Of a stretch of DNA of 64,000 nt, positions 41,247 through 64,000 are shown piece by piece. The stretch covers positions 75,268,001 through 75,332,000 of the forward strand of contig OZ260663.1 in assembly GCA_965285935.1 (NCBI GenBank), in the 5' to 3' direction. The notes below the pieces were generated by a model. It was not told the DNA's origin and did not search any database. It saw nothing but the letters and a program-made list of their open reading frames with translations. Source of the stretch: Ophelia neglecta (taxonomy: Eukaryota). How positions within the stretch are numbered: the stretch's first letter is position 1; each line of letters begins with the position of its first letter. Both the position numbers and the translations under genes were made by a program.

Positions 41247-41509
41247 TCAAACGTTCATTATATGCGCGTTGACGTAAATACTTTCGAAGACTGCAGAGCA
41301 CCCTGTACATTTCCAAGACCCTTCTGTCAGTTGTTCCTCATTTATCTGCTCTGGAGGAAGACATGTTTTGTGCCAGCTTTTCTTACAATCTGAGCACATG
41401 ATACATGTAGTGTCCGGCATCACCAGTCTGGCTGTGCATTCAACACAGTTGATTACTTCTACTTTATCCTGAACTTCTTGAAGGCTCACACTTGAAACTT
41501 CCCGAGCGC
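41247..41509 (-). other. PHD finger (C4HC3) terminal exon of the pseudokinase gene
   Basis: The peptide is CVEC-x12[14 protein letters not shown]15-WKCTGC, preceded by a phase-1 acceptor (tctatttttcag). Confidence 0.8.
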
Positions 41510-44500
41510 CTGAAAAATAGAACACCTGAAATAGTGCTGTTCCTTACATGGCTGTAGATTGAGATGTATTTATAGCAAATTCAACATGATGGTAAGTTGA
41601 AATTATAATGGAGACCCTCACTAAGATTTAGGTAATCGCTAGCGTGAGAGCCACCATAGACTTTTGTCATTTCACGATTATCTGGGACTTGTGTCCACAG
41701 TAACTGCGTTCCAATGTTACTTTTATGGTACATGATTATCATGCATATAAGTACTTGTGTCCGAAGCTGTGTCTTTCTCTGGCTCCATAAATTTGACGTT
41801 TTTTCTTCTGGCTGGTACGGGCAATTCATCGTCACTAAATGCTAGGTTGTCCGCTCCGTTCTCCCCAGTTCCTGTTGAACGTTCTGTTCAGAGCGTAATA
41901 CAATATGACAAGTTATGGCCCGTTTTAGAAAAGGATGTTCATATGTTTGTTACTGTACATCTAACGGATAAGAACTTACGCTTGAATGTTCGTGTACTGA
42001 TTCAATGTCGTTTGTGCTCGGAAACTGTGTCCTTCACTTCAACTGTAGGGAGTATTTAATTCCTAACGAATTCGGACCGATTTAATTGACATTTCCTGAT
42101 TAATGATTTTGTATTATCTGACGGGTAGTGACTCAAATTTTTAAGATAAACACCAATATATATTCTACTACTGTGTTTTGCCGGTTTTCAAAACTCAATG
42201 GGTGCAAACTCTTCTCTTAACTAACAATCTTAATAGTGCAGAGGAAATGTTACCGTTTGAGGTGATGTCTAGCTGATGACAACTGATTTATATTAAACCA
42301 ATTTAATAACCACAGCACATTTGGATAAAACAACCAGTGATTAACATTAGTTCAGGGCGGATTACAGTTCATTTATGCGGACAACTCCGCATGGGGAACT
42401 GTGTAAGCACTAATGGAAAAACAAAATGTGATAACGTCATACTACTGCTATACATAATTAGCAAACATACCTTTTGGTGCCTCTTCTGTTTCACGAAATA
42501 CGACGTGTTTTTGACTGTTTTCCTCATTAATATACTCCATTGTATTTCTTATCTTTGAAAACTCAGGCCTTTCCTTTGGGTTTTCTTGCCAACATTGTTG
42601 CATGATAAGATAAAGTTGATTCGGGCAGCCGTCGGGTTTTGAATGCCGGTAGCCTTTCCTCACACTGTCAAGAACCTGCTTGTTGCTAAGCTTTTCTGAA
42701 ATTAAAGTAAAATTCACTCCTATTGAGGATCGCGTAAAATTGAATTGCCTACTTAAGCAAATACCCCAAGTGAAGGGACTCTTAAAGCAACATGTACCAT
42801 ACAAGAAGGCACTCAAACGGTTGGAATTAGTGAGGTTTGGAAATTATATTTGTATGTGTTGTAGTCGACTAGGTAATTGCATTTAAGGAAGTAATCACAA
42901 ACCGCTATGTAGTCTTAGAACAGACCTGGGTAAGGGATTTCTCCCTTTGTAAATATTTCCACCATTGTGATACCGTAAGACCAGACATCTGACTTGTGTC
43001 CGAATTGTCTTTTTAATATCGCTTCCGGGGCAGCCCAGCGAATGGGAAGCTGGACAGATTCATCTAGAATAAAGTATGCACAAATTGGTTACATGTGCAT
43101 GTCCCTCGTAAGCAGTGTATATTCCCGTAATATGCAAGATTACTGAGCAGGATATAGTCGGAAATTACTAATATGCAATTGGTAGTTAACTCACTGACAC
43201 TGTCAGAAAGAATTAATAAATTCTATAGTGAAAAGTATGGTTGTACTAGAAGGTCCTCTTATGATGTTAATTGGTTAATACGACAGGCTGCTTACAATAC
43301 AATTGAATTGCATTTTACGATGTTTTTATTTCGAGTTTTTATTTTACTTCAATTTAGATTTTGTATCAATTAGAATATGGTATATTATTCTCACCAGCTG
43401 TCGCATAGATAGATTCTTCCATCAGACGAGAGACGCCATAGAGACTGATTTTGACTCTGCGATTGGAGTCAACCATAACATTCCTGGCCGCTACATCTTT
43501 GTGAACAAATGAATGTTCCTCCAGATAGCTCATACCACAGACTATCTGCAGTTGAAAATATAAGATTAGTAACTTAATAAACGTATATGGTGGCCCAATG
43601 ACATAAATAATATTATTTTACAACATGGAATCAAATTAACGTCTGGTAATAAACTGGGGGTCAACAAGAAATTTTCGTTGTTGATAGGTTAACTCGATTT
43701 TTGTTCGTTTAGTGCTAAGTTACAGCACATATAATAAATTGCTAACCGTTTTAGTTTTATTAATAACTAATATTGGCTACCTGTGTGGCAATATCTATCA
43801 AAACCAAGAGGTCCAAGTCGGTTCCTGCGCCATCCCGAAGATAATGAAGCAGATCTCCATTTTCCATCCACTCAGTTATAATACTAATGAAGGATGCTCA
43901 AATAAATATTGACAAAACAAGCACCAAAAGAATTTCGTAGACAACTTTATTTGAGATGTTTAAAATGCTGGTTTCCATGGTAAAATAAAATGTGTTTATT
44001 AATTACCTGTAAGGTTCGCTTTCTACTACTATGCCATAAATGCGGAGTACATTGTTATGTTTCAAGGTCTTCATTTGTTTGCACGTATTTTCAAGTGTTC
44101 CTTTTTCCAACAACCCGTCTTTCAACACTCTCGCACATACAAGTAATGTGTCGTTGAAGTTCCCTACCGTATCGGATATATGAATAAGCTCTATTAATAA
44201 TTCAACCCGATTAACATGTGTGTGTGCGTGATGATCGAAAAGTCAGGCCTCACTGGTAAATAAAAGCCGTGAGGCCAGCGAGTCTTATGTTATTAATGAA
44301 TATGCATTACTGATACAGTAACGTTGGTCGCCCCCCTCAGTTTAAAGTTTAAGCATAATGACTTCAGCAACACAAATCTTACCCCGCCATACTTTTACTA
44401 GTTTCCCCTCGTGCACATTGTCTTTATATGTCAGGTAGTTTTCATCAATGGTGACTTTATTTTGAAAATTCTCACTCAAATCCCACAACATCGGGGGTTG

Positions 44501-47500
44501 TTTCTTGATGGGGTTCTCGATCAATTTCCCTGTGATTTTCAGACACTTCCTTTACATACGAGTATATGACAACAAATTTCTTATTTCCGCGAGGAGGCGA
44601 TATATGCTCTCAGTACTAGTACTATTATGCTGATAATAAGGTAGACAAAATGCCCACACAATTTTTAAGAAATTGGGTTTTAGCACTACAAAACATATCC
44701 TTCGGTAACAAAGTTTCTTACACAAGTTTCCCATGACCAATCAATTGTGTTTGTTGATAATGATAGTAACGCAACAGACCCACCTTGGTAGTGTTTTATC
44801 ATAGCTTCTAAGTTCTGAAAGACCTGGTCGCTTTTAATATGGTATCCCTTGGAGGAATGGATTGGGTACTCGGTGACGTATGGTCCTTTTGAAATGTCGT
44901 AGGACCGCAAAGACAAAACCAAGGAATCTGCAACACCTGAGTAACTTAGAATATCTTTTTTATACCTTTCTATACTGGTACAACTACGCAGAAACAGTCT
45001 GGCAATTGACATATAAAACAAAACCTAACCATTAAAGTCACTTCTTTTTGAAACTAGATAGTCGCCAGTTCGTATATTGGCGGATACTATTCTGCTGAGT
45101 GCCTCACGTCTCGTCAAGTTGCCATGATACCACCTACAACAGCCAGAATTAAGTTACAATTTAAATCTATAAGGCACAAGGGGCATTGACTTTAAATATG
45201 AGACTTATAGATTCGTTGTATTGTATCAGAGTCGTACTCGTAGTGTATGTTATCTTCTTTTGCAGCAATACAGTTGCTAGGTATGAAGCCTAAGCTGTTT
45301 GTTTTGATGTTCCTTACGTGCGACCAGTCGCCTATTCTGGAAGTAGTCCGACAACATTGTGATGCAAAATTTTAAGTCATTCCAATATTGTATCGTTTAT
45401 AATTAAACCATTTTTGGTTTCGATTTTATGCAATGAATGGGCAATCAAGGTAACAGAAACAGTATAAACACCCTACTCTTTTATAGATTCAACAATATCT
45501 CCTTTCGAAAAAGATGCATCGGTCGACCCTCCTTTGAAGTCACAAATTACCATTTTCGTCCCCTTTCCTATCAATTTCACAAAAATAATTCCTTCATAGA
45601 ATGCATGAAATTTTTTATATCACTAAGTTTTATTATATATATATAGCCAAAATCAATATGGCCGTTATGTACGAACAAATTTTTAAGTAAAATTAACGTA
45701 AACTTACCGCCTTTCAATAAATTTGATATGACTGAGGGTCGTGCTGCAAGTGGCGTTGGAATGTCTTCATATTCGTTTCCTAAGGCTTCTTCCGTTTTCG
45801 TCATAAAGGAACTGTCTCGGACGGCCAACTCTGAAGCTACAAAATTCATTGGTACATATCCCACTTCACCATCTGTTTGCCGCTTGCATTTCTTCCAGTT
45901 GCCTTCATTCCTGGTAGAGACATGTAATGTAATGAGGAAAGATGTAAGGTTATATTTATATGAACCAGGTCGGTCATTATAATAACTTATCAATATGCTC
46001 AACAGGAAATGTATAGGTATAAATACACGTTTAAGAGGACTGAGTAAAATGTGAATTTTGAAGGGGGTTGAAAACATTATAACAATACAATTCAATACAT
46101 TTTAATTTTGCCAAGAAACTAATGCAGAATATAGCTGATTTATTATATGCAAATACATAAGTATTCTTATCAAAAAAGGATTGACACCATATGGTATATA
46201 TACCCCATTCTTATTTTCTCTGCGGAATTACATTCCGTGGGGAAAAGAAACAAAGAAGATAAAATAAAATGAAAATTACATTTGAAAGTATAAGACCAAT
46301 TTCAATTGTCACAAACAGTATTTCATGTTATAACCTCCTGATATGACACTGCTTTTTGGGAAAGTCTAAACCTTGGAACATGCACTAGATGATGTGTTCG
46401 CCTAGTTATACAGGAGTGAACATCACAGTTCATAAGGAACATGCCATTAAACAATGCAGGCAGCTAGTTATTTCTATGTTAATATATTACTATAGCAACC
46501 TGGTGTTTATAGATATTGAACAGATCCAGCATTTTCAAGTTTTGAAATATCAGCTCTGTACTTGCTCAATATGGATGACATGATATAATTCTAAAAGCTC
46601 CCTTTTGCAATTTAAACAATAAGTCAAGTCTCTTTTGGTTAGACCCAAGACCTAAATTAATACAGGTTATAAGCTAAGGATAAACAATACAAATACAGAG
46701 CTGTTAAAGCATTTTTGTTGAGTATCCCTTTTGGCATCCATATGATCCCGAAACCTTAAGAAATCTTAAAAAATATCATATTTACATGGTCAGACCAAGA
46801 CAACCTTGAGTCAATGAGGACACACAGGAACTTAGTGGAAGACTAAACACCATGAATTGAGTTTTTTTTTATTGATAAAGGTAATTTATCGGCTTCTCAC
46901 CATGTGGCAATGTTCTTAAAATCCTTATTTATTATTTCTAACACTTTTCTCTCCACATTTATCAGTGACAAATACATAAGTGTCATCAGCAAATAACACA
47001 GAGAAAATTTCTATGGGCCTTGTGATAACTTGTAAAGCTAGAAAGGTTTTTGCAACGGATATCCTCATCTCACTCTACTAAACATGTTAATGACATATTG
47101 TATTAAGGTTTGGGGATGTACTTATTTTTATTTTTTTTCATAGTGGTAATTTTATTTCAGCTTCATCAGTTTCATATATTATCAATGTTGGGGATGTACT
47201 TATGACTCGAAAATAGATTCTATTATAAAAATACAGAAAAGAACAGTACGCGTAATCACTGGGTCGTCGGGAAAAACTCCAACAATTCCAATCTCCGTTG
47301 AAAATAAATACCCATGCCTAGTTTACATATCAGGATTCTGCAATGGCCTCTTGCCACAGGTTATATTATCTATGTTTACATTTTAATTTGGATCTGCTCT
47401 ACTATCACACCTGGCAGGCCGGGAACTCTCATGTGAAGAAACACCAGACTAATATATTTGGAAAAGAAGCCTCATTTGAAACTATATATGTCTGCTCTCG

Positions 47501-50500
47501 TCAAGCGTTCAGAAGGTCTGCAAGGAATTTGTTCATTTCCAAATTAACTGTTCAAATTGACAGGCTATAAATCAAACCTTTATTACACCCCTATGCAATG
47601 CACCTAAAAATATAATACGTTTGGTATTTTCTTTTTATATATATATTGCCACCCTATATGTATTGCTTGTGTCTTCCTTATTTATAATAGACATATAAAC
47701 CATAGGCTTCCTGTTAAGCCAATAGTATTAATCATATAACTGTAAAGTCTCGATTGCCTGTAATTGTATATATATGGCAATACCATTCAATAGATTTAAT
47801 TCAATAGATTCAAGATCATACTTGCAACACTGGAGAGATCATTTAGATATAGAGCAAAAAGAAGTGGTTTTAATATTGATCACTGAGGAACCACATAAAG
47901 TAAATTTCTTAATAGATTTTGTTATAAGAGACAAATTAAGAAAGTCTTTAGAGATAACTCTCAATCAAAGCATAAACAGTGCCACGTTTTCCATATTTAT
48001 ACAATTTTAAAGAAGTATAGAATAATCTCATCACTATTATAACTTAAATCAGGATCTATCTCATCAAAATCAGAGTTAAATTTTGAACTGCTATCATTAA
48101 GTTCAAAAGGATTCAGAAATCTTTCTCTTAGTGCAGACCAACTCAATTTTTCTGGTTATTTTAAATAGTAGAAAGAGTATTCGTGAACTCATCACTCTCT
48201 ATAAATCGATAAGTTCACCAGGAAGTGCATTCTTCTTACATTTAACACAACTCCAATTATTTTGAATAGATCCTGTATATACAGGATTTTTTGCTGAAAC
48301 ACCTGACAGTCACTTTATATGGCACACTCCATAACAAACACCACAGCCAATATAATGAGGCACCGACATTGTATTATGATATCAATATAGATATGCAATC
48401 TAACTTGGACATTTGGAATCAATCAACTAATCTAATTTTTTGAAATAGGCAAGCACATATGAACCAGATTCTGGGTTCAAATTTACTACGTGAGATATTT
48501 CCACCGTTTCCCTGGGATCCCAACCGGACAAAAGGTCGATTCCATATTATTTGAGGCCATTAATTCTCTATATAATTGACCTACTTTATCTTTAGTTGCC
48601 AGTTAAATGTCCTTCAAGGGGGCACTAATATAAGATTTGTCAGCGAAAGCATATGGCTGTGCAATGCTCAGTGTTTCACGATTTGTTTTTTCATTGTAAC
48701 CCTATCCCAATATTTAATGGGAGAGTGTTTGCCAACTCTACACAATTGGGGAAGGCATTGGGGAACGTTTGTTTCAATGTAACAATTGCATGATAGACTA
48801 TCAATAACGATCAACTGTACTTTGTTCCCTAGATGTTTGCTTTTTTTCCTGTCTATTGCGCTTTTCTTTCAGGGATACTGCGAGCGCAGAGTAACTGATT
48901 TGTCTTAACTGACTCGTGTTTATCAAAGACAGTTAGGAGAACTACGAGAGTGTATACTAGGCAGACAATTGAAGCAAAATCGTTAATCAACAATAGCCAG
49001 TTACATCGGTCCGACCTCATCGGGAACAACATACTGAACCACATACTGGCCCACGTACCTTAATCCCAAGCTCCCAAACTGTGAGTGAACTTGTAATGCT
49101 AATAAAAAATGAAAACAGATAAATAGGATTGGAAACCTTTAACCTACTGCATTAGGTACTTACTCTGAGAGTTCTTTGAATTTGTCCCCTTTTTGGAATG
49201 TTAGAAGACCTTCGGAAGGCTCATCAAAGTCATAAAGTGCCACAAATATTTTGGATTGTCTGTCACCTAAAAGTTGATCTTATATGCAATGTCCATTTAA
49301 ATATGTGTGGTAACACTGACAGGCTTAACATGGCTTGTCTATATTTAAATCAAATTTCAATATTAATCTTTCTGTTTTACCAATATAAGTAGTGTAGGCT
49401 ATCGCGTTTTTCAAGCGAGAGAAATAACACGTTAGATCATTAATGAAATAACCTGGCTTATTAGAAATTGATTCGGGAGCTCCAAGTCCGTCTAACGGCA
49501 TACTCGGCTTATTTGGTAGTGGTCGTCTCTCGGAAGTTCCAACCTGGCCTGAATCCGACGTGTCACTTTTAAGCAAACAAACACAATTATAGGTTATTTC
49601 TTTTTTTCTCTAAATGGTTCAATCTTGGAAAAACATCTAGTTTGTAAATAAGGGTATAGTTCTTATTGTTTATTTACAATTTAGCAACGGGGCAAGTTTT
49701 CTCTATTTAATGAGATTTTATAGCCTACAAATCATCATTTTAACTGTACATCTCGAACCGAAATATATTTATAACTAAGCCATACATCGTTGTAAGTGTG
49801 TTTGTATATGAAATATCAGGTGCGGCTGGAAAAAAAAAATCGAATGGTGCAAAATTTAAAATTAAGAAGCAATTGTGAGAATATTTTAATGTCCTTGGAT
49901 TATAAAGAAATTAATATCAATAAACAATGGTAAATTTAACCCTTCATATTCAGATTCCTGTTCCCTGGCCATCTCACTGACGTCCGAGTCTCCGGAACGA
50001 GGAGGCGGAGCGGCTGGCTTACGTGCAAGACTGCTCGGATCGGCTGATTGCATTGGTTTAACCTCCGTTGGTTTCGTCTCCACGATCTCCACTTTCTCCA
50101 AACAGGCCCAATAAACAAGTAAACCTTTAGGATCTTCCACCTCATCATTGGAACTGAGGTTGATACACTTGCATTTAGGGCTGTTATTAACATTCCTATT
50201 GAAGAAGAATACGAATCTTACATACCTTACTTTTAGAAAATCACGCACTTTTCACGTGTCAATCACTAATAAGACGTCACAAGAAGAGAAAGATTCACAC
50301 CGTATCTCGTTAGGCTTATTTGAGAAACCTTTAAGGGAACACAAATGCTCTACAAAGCGAATATTTAGTTGCTGATTTAGTATAAATGTTGAGCATGCGT
50401 GCGTAGTGAATCAGTTGCTCTTCAATCTTAATCGATAATTGTTCCAAGCAGGCCCTCTTGAATATCACACGGGTACAAAAATAGGTAAATCAAATGACTT

Positions 50501-52627
50501 TTGCAAGGGGGCGAGAGGGCGAGGCGGGAGATGTAGGATCGTGTACTAAAGCTTCAAGTCGACCGGTTTGAGGTTCTACCTCTTGAGACTAGTCTCTGTT
50601 GGGTTCGAGTTGGGTGCCGGCTACCGAAGCCTCAATATCAGCTGCTGTTTGAGGCTTTTTGTCAGGGCTAATTAAAGGCACTGTATTATCATGTATATGC
50701 ATTTTTGCCATGCCCCTTTATCCGCTGAGGCAGGTATTTTTCGTTACTACGGAGCATGCAGTTTTACATGCACAATGTCATACCGATTAAGGCAATATGA
50801 GTAAACCGAGAGTCGGGTAATACTCTAATGCTGGGGTGTACGTAGTGTATTGTTATTCTCTTCGTACACACGTATGTACGATTGGTCAACTTCTCGCCTC
50901 GCTGCCTGCCTCTTCGCATGCTCAAGCATCGGAAGAAATGTTTAAACAGGTTTGGGTGCTTTGCACCCTTTTTTGCACCTTTTTTTTATAGACAAGTACA
51001 AAATGTTAAACTAGTCACTGTAACTAATTTCTTCGGGTATAATCCAAGCTGTAATCTCCGGGTCAATTATAATTATCAAATATGAAAATACCTTATTCCG
51101 ATTAAAAGAGCCACCTAAAAGAGGCACACTGCAGTTTAATTACCCTTCATTATTTTGGCCCTTTACCTTTTTCGAAGAAAAATGGCTAGAGGCGGCATGT
51201 ATTGGGCCTCGAACCACGACGCCGGCTACGCCGCGTCTGCCGGCCTACTTCGTTTTGCCCGGAACTAAGCAACGCCTTGAACCAAAGCCCCCAATTTGTC
51301 TTTTTTAATGTATTTGGAACTTGCAGTTTTTGTGTGGATACTTTTTATAAGCTAACTACTTCTATTACTACTCTTAGTGTACACTTCTGCTTGTTCTTTC
51401 TTCCTTCATTTCTATTCATTGCAGGTGGTTTGAAAGAAAATCCTGTTCTTAACCTTTTACCTCTATCTAAGCTTTTACCTTAGAGTATTCGGACTTTAAG
51501 GACTGTCCGAACACCCATTTTTACCACCCCCTTTCATTGATGGGGAACGGGGGGGGGGGGGAGGGGGGGGGGGGTCTCGAGTTTTTAAAGCATTGTGTAA
51601 CAGGAAGGACGGTGATTTACACATACTCGGGAATTAGTTTGCTTTTGATAGTGCCGAAGTTTTTGGTATATCACACAGTCTCGATAATAATCTTTTTTTC
51701 TGATTTTCGGCCAATTGAGATGGAAAAGGCCTTTTTGACACGGAAAATTGAGCCATAGGTGTGGCTTGTAGCGTACTAATTTAAATCGATTTTAAAAACA
51801 AGTTAAGCGATACAATTTGCATCCCTATTTGATACTAACCCTGATACGACCTCAATTATATCTCCCTCGTTGTAGCTTAGGTAGCCTTTTTTCTTTGACT
51901 GATAGGTTCGCTTGGCAGAATATATTGGTTTGCCTGGAATACGATTTCTTGTTGTTATCTTTATTATCAACATTACAGATAGCTAAGTTTCATAGCTCTA
52001 GGTCCATTTCTAATGTCATAATGGTTGGCTATATATTACTTGGGACCATAGACCAATGGAGCGAGCCATGTAGTCGCTGCGGTGAAAGCCGAACTTTTTC
52101 CATATTTGCACCTGCAGACAGCATTTCATAGTCTGTTGAAAACATTTATTTACATACAGATGTGAATTTATTACACTGAATCGACCATGATGAATCGATT
52201 GTTCATTTGTTCAAGTGTGACTTCTCTATAGAGCCGGCAGAATAGCGCCTTTTCGGTAGGTGGAAAAAGTTCGGCTTTCACCGGAGCGACTAGATGGCTC
52301 GCTCCATAGCTCTATGTATGGTCCCAAGTAATATATAGCCAACCATTATGACATTAGAAATGGACCTAGGGCTATGAAACTTAGCTACATTACAGACTGT
52401 GCTAAGTTAATTATAACATGTTGATTGGTTACAAAAGAAAAATGACAAGATAATTAGGCCAAACTTAGTAGACGAAGATGAAGGATTGAACATCCATAAA
52501 AGGTACAGAAATACATGCCTTTTGCCACCATGTCATTCACCTCATTTGGTGTCAAAATGGTCGCAGCGTATTCCAACTCCTGTCCGGGTTCAGATTGGGC
52601 TTCCGGTTTACTGTCACAACACCCCAT
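41247..52627 (-). CDS. Src-like non-receptor tyrosine pseudokinase, ~865 aa: MGCC anchor, Pro/Tyr-rich linker, SH3, SH3, SH2 (Arg-less), pseudokinase, acidic linker, PHD finger
   Basis: Exons on the minus strand are 52627-52515, 50195-49941, 49565-49453, 49266-49164, 45910-45708, 45567-45477, 45336-45238, 45133-45030, 44927 (or 44936)-44784, 44529-44383, 44163-44007, 43883-43781, 43545-43395, 43063-42926, 42695-42471, 41883-41755, 41681-41622 and 41509-41247, all phase-compatible. Motifs seen: ALYDF...[60 protein letters not shown]. The first junction and the linker exons before the PHD are less certain. Confidence 0.85.
41980..42042 (-). other. Candidate 63-nt cassette exon with in-frame TGA ([13 protein letters not shown])
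   Basis: It has a ccctacag acceptor and a gtaagt donor, is symmetric phase 1-1, and lies between the kinase and PHD exons. Confidence 0.55.
46500..48460 (-). mobile_element. Decayed, internally deleted CR1/L2-clade LINE in the intron that splits SH3 #1
   Basis: Minus-strand remnants include a PHD-like [11 protein letters not shown]...WSCVKC (~48230-48370), FLNPFELN...DEIDPD (~48050-48120) and the RT motif VLFADDT (~46980-46998), with many stops. Boundaries are approximate. Confidence 0.7.
51980..52387. mobile_element. MITE with ~120-bp TIRs and 9-bp TSD (Mutator-like)
   Basis: TAGCTAAGTTTCATAGC...GAACTTTTTCCA is mirrored by TGGAAAAAGTTC...GCTATGAAACTTAGCTA, and CATTACAGA flanks both sides. 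Confidence 0.88.
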
Positions 52628-56921: not shown

Positions 56922-59900
56922 ATGGGTATTCTTTGTTGCAAACGTCCAGCCGTGGAGGCAACTGAACACTCTGATATACACGATATACGTCTGGATATAC
57001 CCGCTCATCCAGAACAACAACCACCGGAAGGTATAATCCAAGGTTACAATATTTCCTTACATATGGCCGTACTTTTAAAAGAATTAAGGGCAAGTCGGAT
57101 ATGTTTCATACTGCTGACCAACAACCACTTTTCTTAACCTCCAAAGCAGATTGCAATTAAAAGGCAGTGGTAAGGCTGGGATAAATGGGGCTACTTTCAG
57201 CTGTTCATATGGGAATTTAACATGGGAATGATGTTTTAAAAGCCCTTACTCAGTGCTTGTTGAAGTAATCAAAACAAAACTTTCAGGGATGATTAACATT
57301 TTAGAGCGCTTTCCATTCAGGTAAATTTCACATTTGTGTGATAGCTACAGGAACCGGAACCGCTGCAAATCTGTAGTCTAGCCCCACATTCAAGTGCAGA
57401 CTATTGGTATGCAGTGCTGTCACCACCTTGCTAGCAGGCTGAACTAGAATTATTACATAATCCCCGACTGACCCTATTGCCTACAACACAGTGTTTGTCC
57501 TAGAAATAACAAATGAGTAGTTTAGGCCCTGCTTCCGCTTCCTGTCGAAATTTTTCGTTCCCCTATTACGTACTATTCAAATGTATTACTGTTCGTGTGT
57601 CAACAAGGGTACAGCTGTCGACAATTTAAGATATATTTTCTTACTAGATAATAGGACCTACAGCTGCAGGCCCTCAAACAACAATCCCTAGCTACACAAT
57701 ACTACTGTTACTAAGTTTGTTGCGAAATATAAATCGGATTGATAAACAAAATCTGATAGCCTTTACTCGTGATCTCTTAGGTCAAACCAGTAGTACAATT
57801 TGAATCAAATTCAGTAAACAATTTGAATTTCTGTAGATGGAATGTTTCAAAACATCCAATTCCATTCCAGCCGTTTTTTGATTTGAATATAGAATACCGA
57901 ATTGTTTTCACTTGGCATGCAGTGCGTCTACGTTTGTAATCCATGGGATAATATTTTTTTCCATAGGACAATGAATCTGCCCGTGGAGATTTACACAATA
58001 GCACTGGCGGTATAATTGACATATTCACAGAGGGATTTAACTATTGAACCATTAATATTAGCTTACTTTAATGAGAAAAAGAAATATTTTTTTCACTTCA
58101 CCTGGTACAATGTGGAATGCATTCTCAAATAAACAGTCGTTTTCCTATTTAGCGAGGTTGGTCATTTGAAACAACATGAATGATAATATAAATATCGATG
58201 GGTGCATAAAAATTGTAAGCTTAGCCTACTAATTTCACTAATCACTTTTTAGGATTGTACACAATTATTAGGCTTAGCCTAACTATTTGACGAATTTTCA
58301 TTTGTCACAATTTATCACATTTAATTTGGCAGATTATAGTGCTTACAAAATACAAAGTTTCTTCTGACGTTTTTTATGTGTTGGGATTCATGTTATATGT
58401 TTGTTGTCATACGTTACATAACATTTTCTTCTCCCTATATAACAGTGTCTACAGCTTCACCTAATAGCAGTGGAAGCATCATTCCAGAACATCAACGGTA
58501 AGGGTTCATGCCTGCCTTTGATATAGATAAAGATAAATAAATTATTGCACCAAATGAATATCAAAATTAAACACATATTCGAGCTGAACTGTTAGGCCAA
58601 TAATTATCAATGAATAAAAACATGTTTTTTTTTTCATGGACCACAGATCAAGTACTTCATCAGATTCTCTTAGCCAACAAGAACAGCATGAGATAGAAAA
58701 TAGCGAAGGTGGGTAAATAGCAAAAGTTAGTTCATGTGGTAAGATCTGACGCTCTCTCTTTGACTTGTACGCTTCCTCGTTACTTGAAATATTACGGTAG
58801 TTCATCGACCGCGCCCGCGCAGCCGTTAGTCGAAAATTGCCGAGTCTTAATATTTTGTAATAAACAAGCAAACTAAGGGAGACCTGAAAAAAGTCCTATT
58901 ATATCGTCCACTTTACCGTTGAGTCTTGTGAATTCACAACGAGCCATGGCAGGAAGGCTGAACATTATAAGGGTAAGCTTCAACATATCGGCCTTCTTTA
59001 AGTGTGCTATAGGCCTATATATATCAAATGCAAATTTAAACCACTGAATGTTTAATTATCATGACCTACAGTGTGGAGTTGGCATCTGGTGCTAACGATG
59101 GCGCCGGCGTATGCCGGCTGCTTAGAGAGTCCATGGTTTACCGTAAATATGTTTCTCGAAATAATTACATTACTTTACATGTATCAAAGATCATTTCCGA
59201 GTACTAGTGATTTAAGCTTTTGGCATAGAAAATCCAATTCATAATCATTAAATATTTCTTAAACATCCTCCCACAGGGGGTCACTGGTAGGTGGGTGTTT
59301 ATTTTCCAGGGCCTGAAGTGATTTACACAGCTATGTTTGACCTAGAGCGTTTGAGAGAAGACTGTCTCAGTATGAAAGTAGGGGATCGCTTCAAGTACAT
59401 TTCTACGTAGGTGAAGGCTTCCTTGTTTGTTCTGTAGTTTCGCGGTAAACTCCTCTCGTGTTTATATTGCAAGTTATATAATATTAAATTGATTAAATAA
59501 GTTTTACTTAAGTTGTGAATTTGGTTGTTGTTCTTTGACCGAGGTTGTCGTATGGTGGCCTGAAGTAGATGGTCTCTTGGGACCAAACGGACATTGTTGA
59601 CCATAATAATTTTTCTGCCGGTTATCTATATATTCCCGTATTACTGATTTCTCATCAGTCTACTTAATGAACTTTTCGATTATAGAAGCATCACAGCTTT
59701 CGTAAATTATCAATTCGTATTTTAGTTCTTATCATTACATATTTTAGAAAGGACACATGGTTGCGTCTACAAAACTACAAGACGAAGGAAATCGGATACA
59801 TTCCAAGTAATTTTGTCCAACTAGAATCGAGTATTGAGTCGTGCAGGTAGGTTAAGTGGCGATTCCTTTTGGAAAAAAGATAACAATTATTCTGTTGCAT

Positions 59901-62900
59901 CACAAATGCACCCCCTGCGATATGGTCTTTACCGCTTGACTCTGTACATAATGTATGCCTTTAGTCTTGTATTCAAAACGAAAGGGATCATTCAATTACA
60001 TTAGAATATTTTCATTTTTTCAGCTGGTTTTATGGGATGATAACACTGAAAGAGGCGGAAACATTGCTCGACGAAAATGAATATTCAAATGCGTTCTTGG
60101 TGACAGAAAGAAAAAAAGACCCAGGCAAGTGTCCTGTAAAGTCGGAAGTATTGCTTTCATTTTCCATGCGTAGAGTCACATGAGTTGTCTCGGTTTCGCT
60201 GGCGAGCTAAATCCCTTTTTGTTAACTAACCAGTTAATCCTTATGCCAGATTTTACAGTACGTTTAGATTGGTGTTAATATCACAATTTATTGTAAATCA
60301 TTATTTTTGTTACAGAAATGTGTATATACTACAATACTGAAAAGATCTTTTTGTTTCTGATAGGTTCGTACACCCTTTCGTATAAAGCCATTGACAGTAG
60401 AATGGCTGTTATACGCCATAAACCTATACATTATGACGGGAAGGAATACTATATTACTGGCGAACCCAAATACATCTCATTAAAAGAAGTTGTAGATCAC
60501 TTTAAGGGTAAGATACAAAAACAAATATCCCACATCCATGAAAGATATTGCCAATGCATTCGAAATAAACTTTCAAATACGATCTTTTGACCTTGTCTGT
60601 GATGTTAGAATAACACTTTTCCTCGGTTGGGTTTTACTGAAATTGTTCGCATTCACTTGGATCCTAAGTTGCCTGTTCTGGTCTTAAATCACAGTAGAAC
60701 AAATATACAACCTTTACAAATAACAGACCCATGGCACCCTATAAACATTCCCCTATGGACCAGACCCATTTTATGAACAGCGCATGACATTTCTTCAAGC
60801 TAAGTACTAATGATTGTAAACATTGTAAGCGTATGTGTTATTATTTACGGCTGTTCTATATTTATGGAGGCAATATGACATATCAAAATATATTCTAGAA
60901 TGATATTTGTTTCAGACAAAAATTCTTTAGGGAACCATACATGTACCCATCCAGAGCCCACAATATACGGCTTGACAACTACAGACGACAAATTACATAT
61001 TTCATTTGATACCCTCACACTGGGGAAGGTAATCGGAGACGGTAATTTTTGCACGGTATACGAAGGTAAGAATGACGGAAGAATGTTAGGTCACGCTTAC
61101 GCTGCTTTAAAACCTACGACATGTTAAAGTTATGCGAGCTTTCGATCACGGACAACAACAGGAATTGATACCCGGCAAGCAGATAAAGCAAAAAAACTTA
61201 TCAGGAACATTCCATTGAATAAGCCCGAGATTAATCATCAGGAACCACAAGCACGCATAAATCTATGATATGTATGAATATGTACCAATTACACATTAAA
61301 TCCGAACAAAAAGCAACTCTTTCTCCTGGGCCTACACCACGACATTGTAATATTTGCATGCAGACGATTATGATTGACAGGTACATGCACATTGATCGGA
61401 GGGCGACAAGTCGCTGTAAAACAGCTGAATGGGGAATGTGTCAACGAAACATTGTTAAACCAAGAAGTAAACGTAATGAAACAGTTACGGCATGAAAATG
61501 TGGTGTGTCTTTTGGCTATCTGCATGGAAAAGGGTTTTTACATCGTCACAGAACTGATGGCAAGAGGCTCTCTTTTCACGTATCTACGTATTCAAAGCCA
61601 TAAAGGTGGCCTCAAAACTGGGGACATATTGATAATTGCTAAAAAGGTAAGAGTTGTGGTAAAAACGTTGGATAATTTCTTGAAATTTTATGTATATACA
61701 TTCCCGGAGGTCCTGTTACACTTTGCCATTTCGGTTGCTTAAACAATAAATATTCGAATTTAGATTGCTGCGGGCATGCAATATTTGGAAAGCAAACACT
61801 TTGTCCATCGCGATCTGGCGGCCAGAAATGTTCTTCTTGGAGAACAAGGAAAAGTGAAAGTCAGTGACTTTGGAATGGCCAAAAAGATAAAAAACGAATT
61901 ATACATTTCACCAGGTAGTGTGTAATTTGTGATCAAACCATGGTTTTACAAAGCAAAACGACTCTTCTGTAATCAGGTGAGGCAGTGCGTCTTTATGTTA
62001 AAAAAAACCTGTTCCTTTCAGATGAAAAGGAGCCTAAGCCTATTCGATGGTGTGCACCAGAAACATTGCTTCCGACAGATCCGATATTTACCCATAGTAG
62101 TGATATTTGGTCTTTTGCCATCGTTTTGGTTGAAATGTTTCAAGATGGAGAACAACCTTATCCCGGTGACTTTTTAAAAATGTCAATTTCACATAGTTGT
62201 AACTTAAACATCTTATAATTGTATGCCTCTTATGAAGTTAGGGATTAATAAAAATTAAATGAGTTAAATGATGTGTAGCGTAAAAAGGAAATACCTCTTG
62301 ATGTTCTCCTTTCTTTGGAGATACCGACACCGTCTCGGAAATGGTTTATGCATCGATTTCACTTTATGAATAGGAGATGGTTATTGCATCCTGACTCCTC
62401 ATTAAAAAAAACACTAAAATTACACACCTGTAGGAGTATTAGGTTAGACGACACACTGAGAGTAGCAAATTGTAAACCACGACACGAGGTGCTGTTATGA
62501 TCACCAGCATCTGACCACCTGCATCCTTGAATTTTAGCATGTTCATTTATTCTTGGCCAGCTTGATCTACTTTCATACCAAGATCACGATACTATCTCGG
62601 AATTTTAAACGCTCATACCTCAGTGATATATAGAGACATATTTCAATGAAGTTTGTTATTGTGTGGCCTGTCCACACCGGTGCCGCTTGTGCACTTTTTG
62701 CTGAGAAGGGGTGATATTATTTATATTCGCCTGCAATAGTGCAAATTTGAAACCTAGGTCTAGCGGCTATTTTGATACTTTGAAAGCTTCTCTAACCTAG
62801 TAAACCTAGCTAACCGTGTCTCAAATAACGTTTTTATACTACCAAATGCATCCTCATTACAAATTTTATATTAAGTTTTAACCTATCCAATTTCATGTTT

Positions 62901-63678
62901 AGGTTTAAGTACGCGTGGAGTGGTGGATTTTGTCCAATCAGGAAAACGTCACGAAAAGCCTGAAAAATGTCCGCCAGGGGTATATCGTTTGATGAAGCTT
63001 TGCTGGAAAGAGCAGCCAGAAGAACGGCCAAATTTTTCTGACGTATATGACAAAATATTCAAACTCATCGAAGAAGGTATAAAACTGCAATCGCAAAACG
63101 GATTTAGTCGTAGCAAACTGGTAACAATAATCACTAATATACCACATTAATGGAGCCCTGTTTAATTATACATCCTTTCCCAATCTTTCTATCGTTCACT
63201 AGGTACACACGACCAAGTGCACTTTAATGTGGCTTTTGACTCCAGCGACGAAGACACTGATAGCATTCCCTCCGAAAATCACTCATCGGATGGAGGTATC
63301 CTCTAACAAATGCTTCCAGCGCTAATTACACTTTACAGTAAGGGATACGTCCTACCGGTGTGCCAGCTCTCTAATTCTTTACAGTTTTATGTGTTATGAT
63401 ATGAGGTAACTTGTTTTGTTATTTAAGGAGACAAATCTGGGACAGAATGGCGGGACCGAGCCCATGACTCGGAAGATTCCAATAATCTTCGTCACGTCTG
63501 CCCTGTATGTAAACAACGTAGAAATCACAATGAACCACTGGATGGGACCTCGTGGAGAAAATGTGTTTCTTGTGACTTTTGGTTCCACGCACTATGTGTA
63601 ACAGGTAAACCAAAAGATAATGGCAACAGAGATGATGATTTATTTATGTGTAATCGCTGTCGACGATTAACATTTTAA
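56922..63678 (+). CDS. Src/Frk-like non-receptor tyrosine kinase, ~630 aa: MGILCC anchor, SH3, SH2 (Arg-less), active kinase, acidic linker, PHD finger
   Basis: Exons are 56922-57030, 58446-58497, 58647-58708, 59310-59406, 59748-59846, 60024-60124 (GC donor), 60364-60507, 60916-61065, 61381-61646, 61764-61914, 62022-62165, 62903-63076, 63203-63295 and 63428-63678, totalling 1893 nt in one open frame. Motifs seen: [59 protein letters not shown] is at 63851. Small extra linker exons are possible. Confidence 0.88.
63428..63678 (+). other. PHD finger terminal exon of the active kinase (absent from the ORF track)
   Basis: Read in phase 1 it gives ...[61 protein letters not shown]. Confidence 0.85.
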
Positions 63679-64000
63679 GAATCCAGAACGTCATTCCAGG
63701 ACAAAGGTATAGGATTGGTTAACTGTTTCAACAAAAAGAGATTAATACTCAATGTAAACAAATGCTGTTTTATGAAAAAAAATCATAATTGATCGTACAA
63801 TTAGAGATAATTCTAATGCACCTTATATCGACATGCATGACTCAGGTATTAATAAAGGTGCCAATGTACAAGCTTATATAGTGAGGCCAATGATCCAATC
63901 AATGAAGTTCACCTTTGCTAAATAAGGCTTTGAAAGTAGTCTTGTTTGTTAACATTTATATTGATTTGTATGATAGCCTAATTGGTGTTAAATTCAACCT

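Follow-up and report, generated by a model that had tools for sequence, protein, structure and literature searches.

Does a tyrosine kinase gene in the genome of Ophelia neglecta run on into a PHD-type zinc finger, and, if so, what would such a finger do on a kinase of this kind? The question is raised by a stretch of 64,000 nucleotides (the window) that covers positions 75,268,001-75,332,000 of the forward strand of contig OZ260663.1 in assembly GCA_965285935.1, is labelled G000:C5:75268001-75332000 within the 762-Mb assembly and consists of intron-rich animal DNA. The SH3-SH2-kinase unit is among the oldest and best-studied signalling modules of animals. To our knowledge, few additions to it are known (PH-TH in Tec, an actin-binding domain in Abl and lipid anchors in the Src kinases), and the PHD finger is otherwise almost confined to chromatin proteins. 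The original prediction, made from the letters of the window, had reported an SH3-SH2-tyrosine kinase-PHD architecture that it did not recognize. This architecture recurs in four diverged genes of the genome, here called A to D, and neither a literature description nor a protein relative of it was found. With fair probability, the finger is the true C-terminal domain of gene A, a gene of 12 exons (56922-63678, + strand) that encodes a predicted lipid-anchored kinase of the Src-module type.

Gene A and the exon behind its kinase

To define the gene, homology and domain searches were run exon by exon, with separate exons as queries; this holds for all searches described here. The parts of gene A and the signal behind it are as follows.

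56922-57030, + strand: exon 1, 109 bases, phase-1 donor, starting with MGILCCK
59277-59846, + strand: SH3 domain, two exons with approximate borders (59277-59406 and 59748-59846), assigned because the SH3 exons of genes B, C and D are homologous to it
60024-60507, + strand: SH2 domain in two exons (about 60024-60169 and 60364-60507), with Pfam SH2 expect values (E) of 9e-4 and 1e-4
60916-63076, + strand: tyrosine kinase domain in five exons, assigned from Pfam PK_Tyr_Ser-Thr matches per exon, PDB matches and splice sites
63203-63295, + strand: acidic, Ser/Asp-rich linker exon, 93 bases, phase 1 on both sides, assigned from splice sites and reading frame
63428-63678, + strand: terminal exon with a phase-1 acceptor, encoding 23 linker residues and the PHD-type finger, with the stop codon at 63676-63678
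63851-63856, + strand: AATAAA polyadenylation signal, 173 bases past the stop codon, read from the sequence

The protein would begin with MGILCCK, an SH4-like start that is a candidate site for both myristoylation and palmitoylation. The second SH3 exon contains GYIPSNFV; the Pfam search with the split SH3 pieces gave nothing significant. All of the kinase exons (about 60916-61065, 61381-61646, 61764-61914, 62022-62165 and 62903-63076) are matched by Pfam PK_Tyr_Ser-Thr, with E from 5e-14 to 4e-20, and the domain retains the glycine loop, the activation-loop Tyr and WCAPE.

The last kinase exon ends at a donor at 63076 (aag/GTATAA) in phase 1, with one base left over, and the acceptor at 63203, which is preceded by a 75% pyrimidine tract, supplies the remaining two bases of the codon. 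The linker exon ends in turn at a phase-1 donor at 63295 (gag/GTATCC), from which the frame continues at 63428. The splice sites at 63076, 63203, 63295 and 63428 are thus all of phase 1, and all have good consensus. The original prediction had joined the kinase to CPVC...CNRC through 63076>63203 and 63295>63428, and every sequence feature that this path calls for is present, the splicing itself being inferred. Neither the linker exon nor the finger exon of gene A contains an in-frame Met ahead of the finger. Because of this, the two exons cannot form a separate gene and need coding exons upstream, the nearest of which on the + strand are the kinase exons of gene A. No polyadenylation signal was seen before the gene A finger. 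It is likely, with good confidence, that the finger exon is joined to the kinase in one gene, and the most economical gene model, which these features support, would encode a lipid anchor, SH3, SH2, a tyrosine kinase and a PHD-type finger.

The placement of the pattern within the window points the same way. Among 1186 open stretches, the C4HC3 pattern has 2 matches, compared with 0.003 expected after shuffling, which excludes chance. Both matches lie directly 3' of the last exon of a kinase and on the same strand; the first is gene A, and the second belongs to a paralog on the opposite strand.

Four genes of one layout

This paralog, gene B, lies head-to-head with the apparently active kinase gene A at a distance of 4.3 kb, and the first exon is 109 bases long in both. 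Its parts are the following.

52519-52627, - strand: exon 1 of gene B, 109 bases, phase-1 donor, starting with MGCCDSK
42471-49279, - strand: body of gene B (borders approximate), with two SH3 domains, an SH2 domain and a kinase-like domain
41755-41883, - strand: linker exon, 129 bases, both ends in phase 1, a homologue of the gene A linker
41247-41509, - strand: last exon, entered in phase 1, with the core of the PHD-type finger at 41447-41298, Pfam PHD 24.3 bits
41182, - strand: ATTAAA signal of gene B

Two SH3 domains appear to be present in gene B, with the halves of one at 49279-49163 and 45936-45820 and those of the other at 45619-45476 and 45371-45258 (- strand); gene A has one such domain. 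In its kinase-like domain (42471-44551, - strand), DFG is replaced and the glycine loop is degenerate (HEGKLVKV). For these reasons, gene B probably encodes a pseudokinase, yet it keeps the lipid-anchor motif, SH3, SH2 and the finger. The last kinase exon (42690-42471, - strand) ends in phase 1, as in gene A, and the linkers have corresponding motifs (VAFDSSDED in gene A and LAFSDDELP in gene B). The claim that the paralog has its own finger at the same position is hence borne out. The junction that had been suggested for it, 41622>41509, is in phase and possible; it is, however, one of several routes, and the route through the 129-base exon at 41883-41755 is likelier because that exon carries the motif homologous to the gene A linker.

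A search of the genome with the kinase exons of gene A located two more genes of this type, C and D, which are arranged in tandem at C5:25.39-25.43 Mb, 50 Mb from genes A and B on the same chromosome. Both have the exon order of gene A, with SH3, an SH2 that reads FIISER, a kinase with HRDIAARN, DFG and WAAPE, and a phase-1 end, and in both a phase-1 terminal exon encodes a C4HC3 finger followed by a stop codon. As the tandem pair repeats the arrangement, the genes make up a family of four members. When the four finger exons are aligned, those of genes B, C and D are 15-22% identical to that of gene A, and no column is invariant other than the eight zinc ligands. The original prediction had noted for two genes that these ligands are kept despite strong divergence; the observation now extends to four. 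The spacing x2/x4/x2/x17/x2 and the phase-1 junction are likewise common to all four fingers. Frame, phase, zinc ligands and loop lengths would not persist in an exon out of use across four genes at 15-22% identity, which is the main argument that the finger belongs to the kinases.

To judge how far the finger extends beyond these genes, the whole genome was searched with a profile and with single finger sequences; the four fingers were recovered, and nothing else convincing. The kinase loci checked for a finger were three canonical Src-like genes (C5:58.07, 58.10 and 63.56 Mb), a Frk-like gene (L050) and a FAK-like gene (L023), with 18 further kinase loci left out. No such finger occurs in the 10-kb stretches around each of the three Src-like genes, and none was seen in the approximately 1.5 kb that is readable downstream of the Frk-like and FAK-like genes. 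The canonical gene closest to the catalytic-loop (HRD) exon of gene A is the Frk/Src42A-like L050 (G000:C5:44990096-44993242), with 59% identity, and this gene may represent the type from which the finger-bearing family arose.

Class of the finger and its possible ligand

The core of the gene A finger, from Cys24 to Cys77 of the exon product, occupies 63499-63660 and has the pattern C-x2-C-x17-C-x2-C-x4-H-x2-C-x17-C-x2-C. The C4-H-C3 order and spacing of ligands that characterize the PHD class are matched by all four genes. An aromatic residue two positions before Cys7, usually Trp, is a hallmark of PHD fingers; at this position gene A has Phe, gene B has Trp, and genes C and D have Tyr. Against a Pfam PHD (PF00628) gathering cut-off of 24 bits, the fingers of genes A and B score 27.1 and 24.3 bits, and for the gene A finger protein-language features point to PHD clusters (0.93). 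Its best sequence matches in the PDB are PHD3 of KDM5B and of KDM5A, PHF2, PHF8 and KDM7, all of them H3K4me3 readers (E 0.005-0.1, 20-21 bits), and its top Foldseek matches are all PHD fingers (TAF3, MLL1, MLL3, UHRF1 and Pygo; best E 0.012).

Other zinc-binding classes were considered and rejected. RING-CH domains have the spacing Cys-x-Cys-x7-His between ligands 3, 4 and 5, and C1 domains follow the pattern His-x12-Cys-x2-Cys-x13/14-Cys-x2-Cys-x4-His-x2-Cys-x7-Cys. The RING-CH/RINGv reading fails as all four fingers have Cys-x2-Cys-x4-His and score under the Pfam cut-off. The C1 reading fails as there is no Cys seven residues past His-x2-Cys, where the fingers instead have x17 and then Cys-x2-Cys, and as the C1_1 scores of 15-17 bits lie under the cut-off of 26.5 bits. 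FYVE and Rubicon-homology readings were dismissed for their ligand spacing and for scores under the Pfam cut-offs.

The known fingers that come nearest to that of gene A in these comparisons are the PHD3-type H3K4me3 readers of KDM5A and KDM5B (also PHF2, PHF8 and TAF3). They share the C4HC3 order and spacing, they provide the best PDB sequence matches, and TAF3 and other PHD fingers that bind the H3 tail lead the structural matches. In KDM5A PHD3, W1625 and W1635 form the trimethyl-lysine cleft (PMC9172573). In the alignment, their counterparts in gene A are the Trp residues of SWRKC and FWFH, such that both cage Trp are present in that finger; genes C and D keep only the first, and gene B has neither in register. 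Because gene A has a two-Trp cleft of the KDM5A/B PHD3 type, its likeliest ligand would be an extended peptide with a trimethyl-lysine or a similar cation. Judging from these alignments, the ligand of the gene A finger is probably methyl-lysine-like, and those of genes B, C and D are probably different. Since the latter lack the full cage, the safest label for the family as a whole is a generic peptide-binding finger. The resemblance to the KDM5A/B readers has further limits: the similarity is weak (20-21 bits), and the finger studied here sits on a probably myristoylated cytoplasmic kinase and not on a chromatin protein. A complex prediction of the gene A finger with residues 2-36 of the genome's own H3 returned 'no answer' with a score of 0.00, which counts neither way; methyl-lysine cannot be modelled.

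In the same genome, a canonical H3 of 136 residues is encoded by a gene at L052:1483-1893, and histone gene clusters form long tandem arrays with a period of approximately 6.6-7.8 kb at G000:C9:11.23-11.40 Mb and 13.51-13.65 Mb. Further arrays are found at C2:7.25-7.32 Mb and at C1:120.9 and 124.6 Mb.

Several results speak against a PHD finger that is both used and under selection in this family, and they concern its class, its proposed ligand and its use. With respect to class, the fingers of genes C and D reach only 16.4 and 15.2 bits with Pfam PHD, below the cut-off, and score about equally with C1_1. PHD fingers have an interleaved cross-brace fold with two zinc ions and a short two-stranded sheet; the AlphaFold2 model of the finger is weak, with a predicted local distance difference test (pLDDT) score of 62 and two short strands, and no Foldseek match reaches E 0.001. 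In addition, the ESM Atlas structure search returns a mixture of PHD, RING, SLX1_C and MYND fingers in which PHD and RING are not separated. With respect to ligand, the two-Trp cleft is present in one gene of the four (gene A), and a myristoylated protein would be an odd location for a histone reader. With respect to use and conservation, the fingers of genes C and D differ by 6 amino-acid changes and 1 silent change, without indication of purifying selection over this time scale; the introns of the two genes differ by approximately 5%, and the test is uninformative because these recent duplicates are too alike. The public reads are DNA contigs that lack joints at 63076>63203 and 63295>63428, and splicing is inferred from sequence. 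Finally, the collections searched yielded no relative. With phmmer, the finger exon drew a single match among 1.84 billion representative proteins, a spurious one of low complexity, and a word-indexed search was blank for each of its queries (finger exon, N-lobe kinase exon and four-finger alignment), long full-length proteins being out of its range, as this tool sees only proteins of 0.55-1.75x the query length. A metagenome scan with the last kinase exon found 16 other kinase loci, none of which is followed by a finger. These blank results are weak ones, because the word-indexed tool misses proteins much longer than an exon-sized query and the exons were never joined. As no relative was found in these collections, the genes are described here as a family of this one genome.

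The results on class leave some room for the function that the original prediction had preferred, in which the finger would be a membrane- or lipid-binding module (C1-like, or with phosphoinositide binding as in ING2) or would have E3 ligase activity of the RING-like type seen in MEKK1 or in RING-CH proteins. The probable membrane anchoring through the MG..CC start, the equal C1_1 and PHD scores of genes C and D, and the RING and SLX1_C fingers in the Atlas search are consistent with such a role. However, Cys-x2-Cys-x4-His together with the aromatic residue before Cys7 marks a PHD and not a RING-CH finger, which argues against E3 ligase activity; the distal Cys of C1 is absent; and all C1 and RING scores lie below their Pfam cut-offs. 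Lipid binding is made less likely by the flanks of the finger, which contain no polybasic stretch like that of ING2. A lipid or ubiquitin role is accordingly regarded as quite improbable. The original prediction had ranked a lipid, protein or ubiquitin-pathway module above a chromatin reader; in that form the inference is not supported, as the evidence from the sequence is mixed. MEKK1 (MAP3K1) does resemble the present genes in that a single chain carries both a protein kinase domain and a C4HC3-like zinc finger of the cross-brace type. It is, however, a Ser/Thr kinase of the MAP3K class, its finger is on the N-terminal side of the kinase and has E3 ligase activity, and it has neither SH3 nor SH2.

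The results on use bear on a different explanation, namely that the finger exon lies outside the main kinase product. The transcripts would then end in read-through tails, of 24 more codons past 63076 or of ...DGGIL and a stop past 63295, and the exon would be a relic, an alternative 3' exon of rare use or a piece of an unrecognized neighbouring transcript. The linker exon, which has phase 1 at both ends, could be skipped without a break in the frame and is hence optional, and the DNA origin of the public runs and the want of a database protein with a related finger fit this explanation as well. Against it stand the open frame, the eight ligands, the loop lengths and the intron phase that are kept across the four divergent genes, the lack of an own start codon in both the linker and the finger exon, and the polyadenylation signal that follows the finger with none seen before it. 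Taken together, these observations make an unused exon improbable and favour the finger as the C-terminal domain of the kinase.

The reads come from three public runs of one sample, none recorded as RNA, and were compared over 58001-64000. Over this interval they are genomic contigs that cover the introns, and their differences from the window are heterozygous single-nucleotide polymorphisms and two intronic indels. A second haplotype is apparent in the DNA of this sample, with many such polymorphisms, a deletion of 56 bases and the replacement of 114 bases by 5. The deletion and the replacement (window 58161-58218 and 62723-62838) both fall within introns of gene A, and local heterozygosity is high.

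Changes in the SH2 domain and tail, and a proposed origin

The remaining question is what the finger would do on these kinases. Genes A to D share with the Src-module kinases (Src, Frk/Src42A, Abl, Tec and Csk) the order of SH3, SH2 and kinase. With the Src family, genes A and B share the N-terminal lipid-anchor motif of Met-Gly and Cys (MGILCCK in gene A, MGCCDSK in gene B), and with Frk, Csk, Abl and Tec gene A shares the HRDLAARN catalytic loop. An activation-loop Tyr is a further feature that gene A has in common with the Src-module kinases. Several features of the Src family in the strict sense are absent. In place of HRDLRAAN, which the canonical Src genes of this genome do carry, the catalytic loop reads HRDLAARN in gene A, HRDIAARN in genes C and D and HKDVAARN in gene B; genes A and B have no C-terminal regulatory Tyr; and the FLVRES Arg βB5 is replaced in all four genes. 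Based on these three features, the family falls outside the Src family in the strict sense. The encoded proteins would nevertheless work in the manner of Src-module kinases. Exon-level PDB matches of the gene A kinase settle on no single vertebrate subfamily. The family differs further from the Src-module kinases as a whole by the addition of a C-terminal PHD-type finger behind an acidic linker and by the two SH3 domains and degenerate catalytic core of gene B. In the full-text literature searched, no paper describes a tyrosine kinase with a PHD finger, and 'PHD' is absent from the holozoan tyrosine kinome surveys that were found. An SH3-SH2-tyrosine kinase-PHD architecture is therefore undescribed in that literature, a conclusion that the searches support.

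The changes in SH2 are seen at the following sites, which were read from the sequence.

60024-60169, + strand: SH2 motif site of gene A, FLVTER
45028-45153, - strand: SH2 motif site of gene B, YLVSKR
L008:9912-10000 with L009:1-19, and L011:3644-3751: SH2 motif sites of the tandem pair, FIISER

In an alignment to the C-terminal SH2 domain of SHP2, FLVTER of gene A stands at the FLVRES position, with Thr as residue βB5; Ser occupies this position in genes B, C and D. All of the replaced sites have an Arg two positions later. As judged from the motifs, the replacement is a derived state common to the family, and canonical phosphotyrosine binding should be lost with it. Genes A and B have no Tyr in the segment that connects kinase and finger.

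The linkers of the tandem pair differ at this point. Ahead of the finger, gene C has EQEYDYIP (L009:4616-4700) and gene D has EDQYDYIP (L011:8087-8175), a motif that resembles a kinase tail phosphorylation site, with no Tyr there in genes A and B.

The joint changes in SH2 and tail suggest one function in particular, in which the finger and acidic linker act as an intramolecular latch on SH2 or the kinase that replaces the Src clamp between phosphotyrosine tail and SH2 and holds the kinase off or on. The finger occupies the exact position of the Src regulatory tail, the SH2 Arg βB5 is lost in all four genes, genes A and B lack the tail Tyr, and these losses coincide with the gain of the finger in the same family. 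Nonetheless, correlation is the sole basis of this proposal. The surfaces of the fingers are very different between paralogs while kinase and SH2 are better conserved, and the probable pseudokinase encoded by gene B, which needs no catalytic latch, still keeps its finger. An internal latch is thus considered unlikely, and the finger is discussed below as a module for docking peptides.

Invertebrate genomes often show lineage-specific domain shuffling, and a history of this kind can be proposed for the family. By ordinary exon shuffling, a new phase-1 intron where the kinase ends and, behind it, a last exon encoding a PHD-type C4HC3 finger would have been added to the ancestor of the four genes. 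Afterwards, selection would have held the zinc scaffold and the loop lengths as the surface diverged to 15-22% identity. The family would also have lost the SH2 Arg that grips phosphotyrosine, and genes A and B would be without the Src-type tail Tyr as well; with both gone, the classical latch of phospho-tail and SH2 cannot work. In its place, the finger may serve as a small peptide-docking module through which the membrane-bound kinase reaches a substrate or partner, or which takes over part of the regulatory role of the tail. The fingers of genes B, C and D, without the full cleft, would probably bind peptides other than that proposed for gene A.

The analysis adds to the original prediction the tandem pair of genes C and D, by which the two genes of the window become part of a four-member family, and the shared loss of the phosphotyrosine-binding Arg of SH2. 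Were the finger exon little used, the locus would be one more case of lineage-specific exon shuffling. The boldest interpretation, that lineage-specific kinases swapped control by phosphotyrosine tail and SH2 for a PHD finger and that at least one member reads a methylated lysine or an H3-tail-like peptide, is doubtful at present. If it is true, the reading of lysine methylation would be wired directly to tyrosine phosphorylation within a single protein. A gene A finger that reads methyl-lysine would represent a rare direct link between two post-translational codes and would also offer a handle on non-histone or cytoplasmic ligands of PHD fingers. A family that adds a PHD finger to the SH3-SH2-kinase unit would be a natural experiment in the rewiring of Src regulation, all the more so given the loss of both the SH2 pocket and the tail Tyr.
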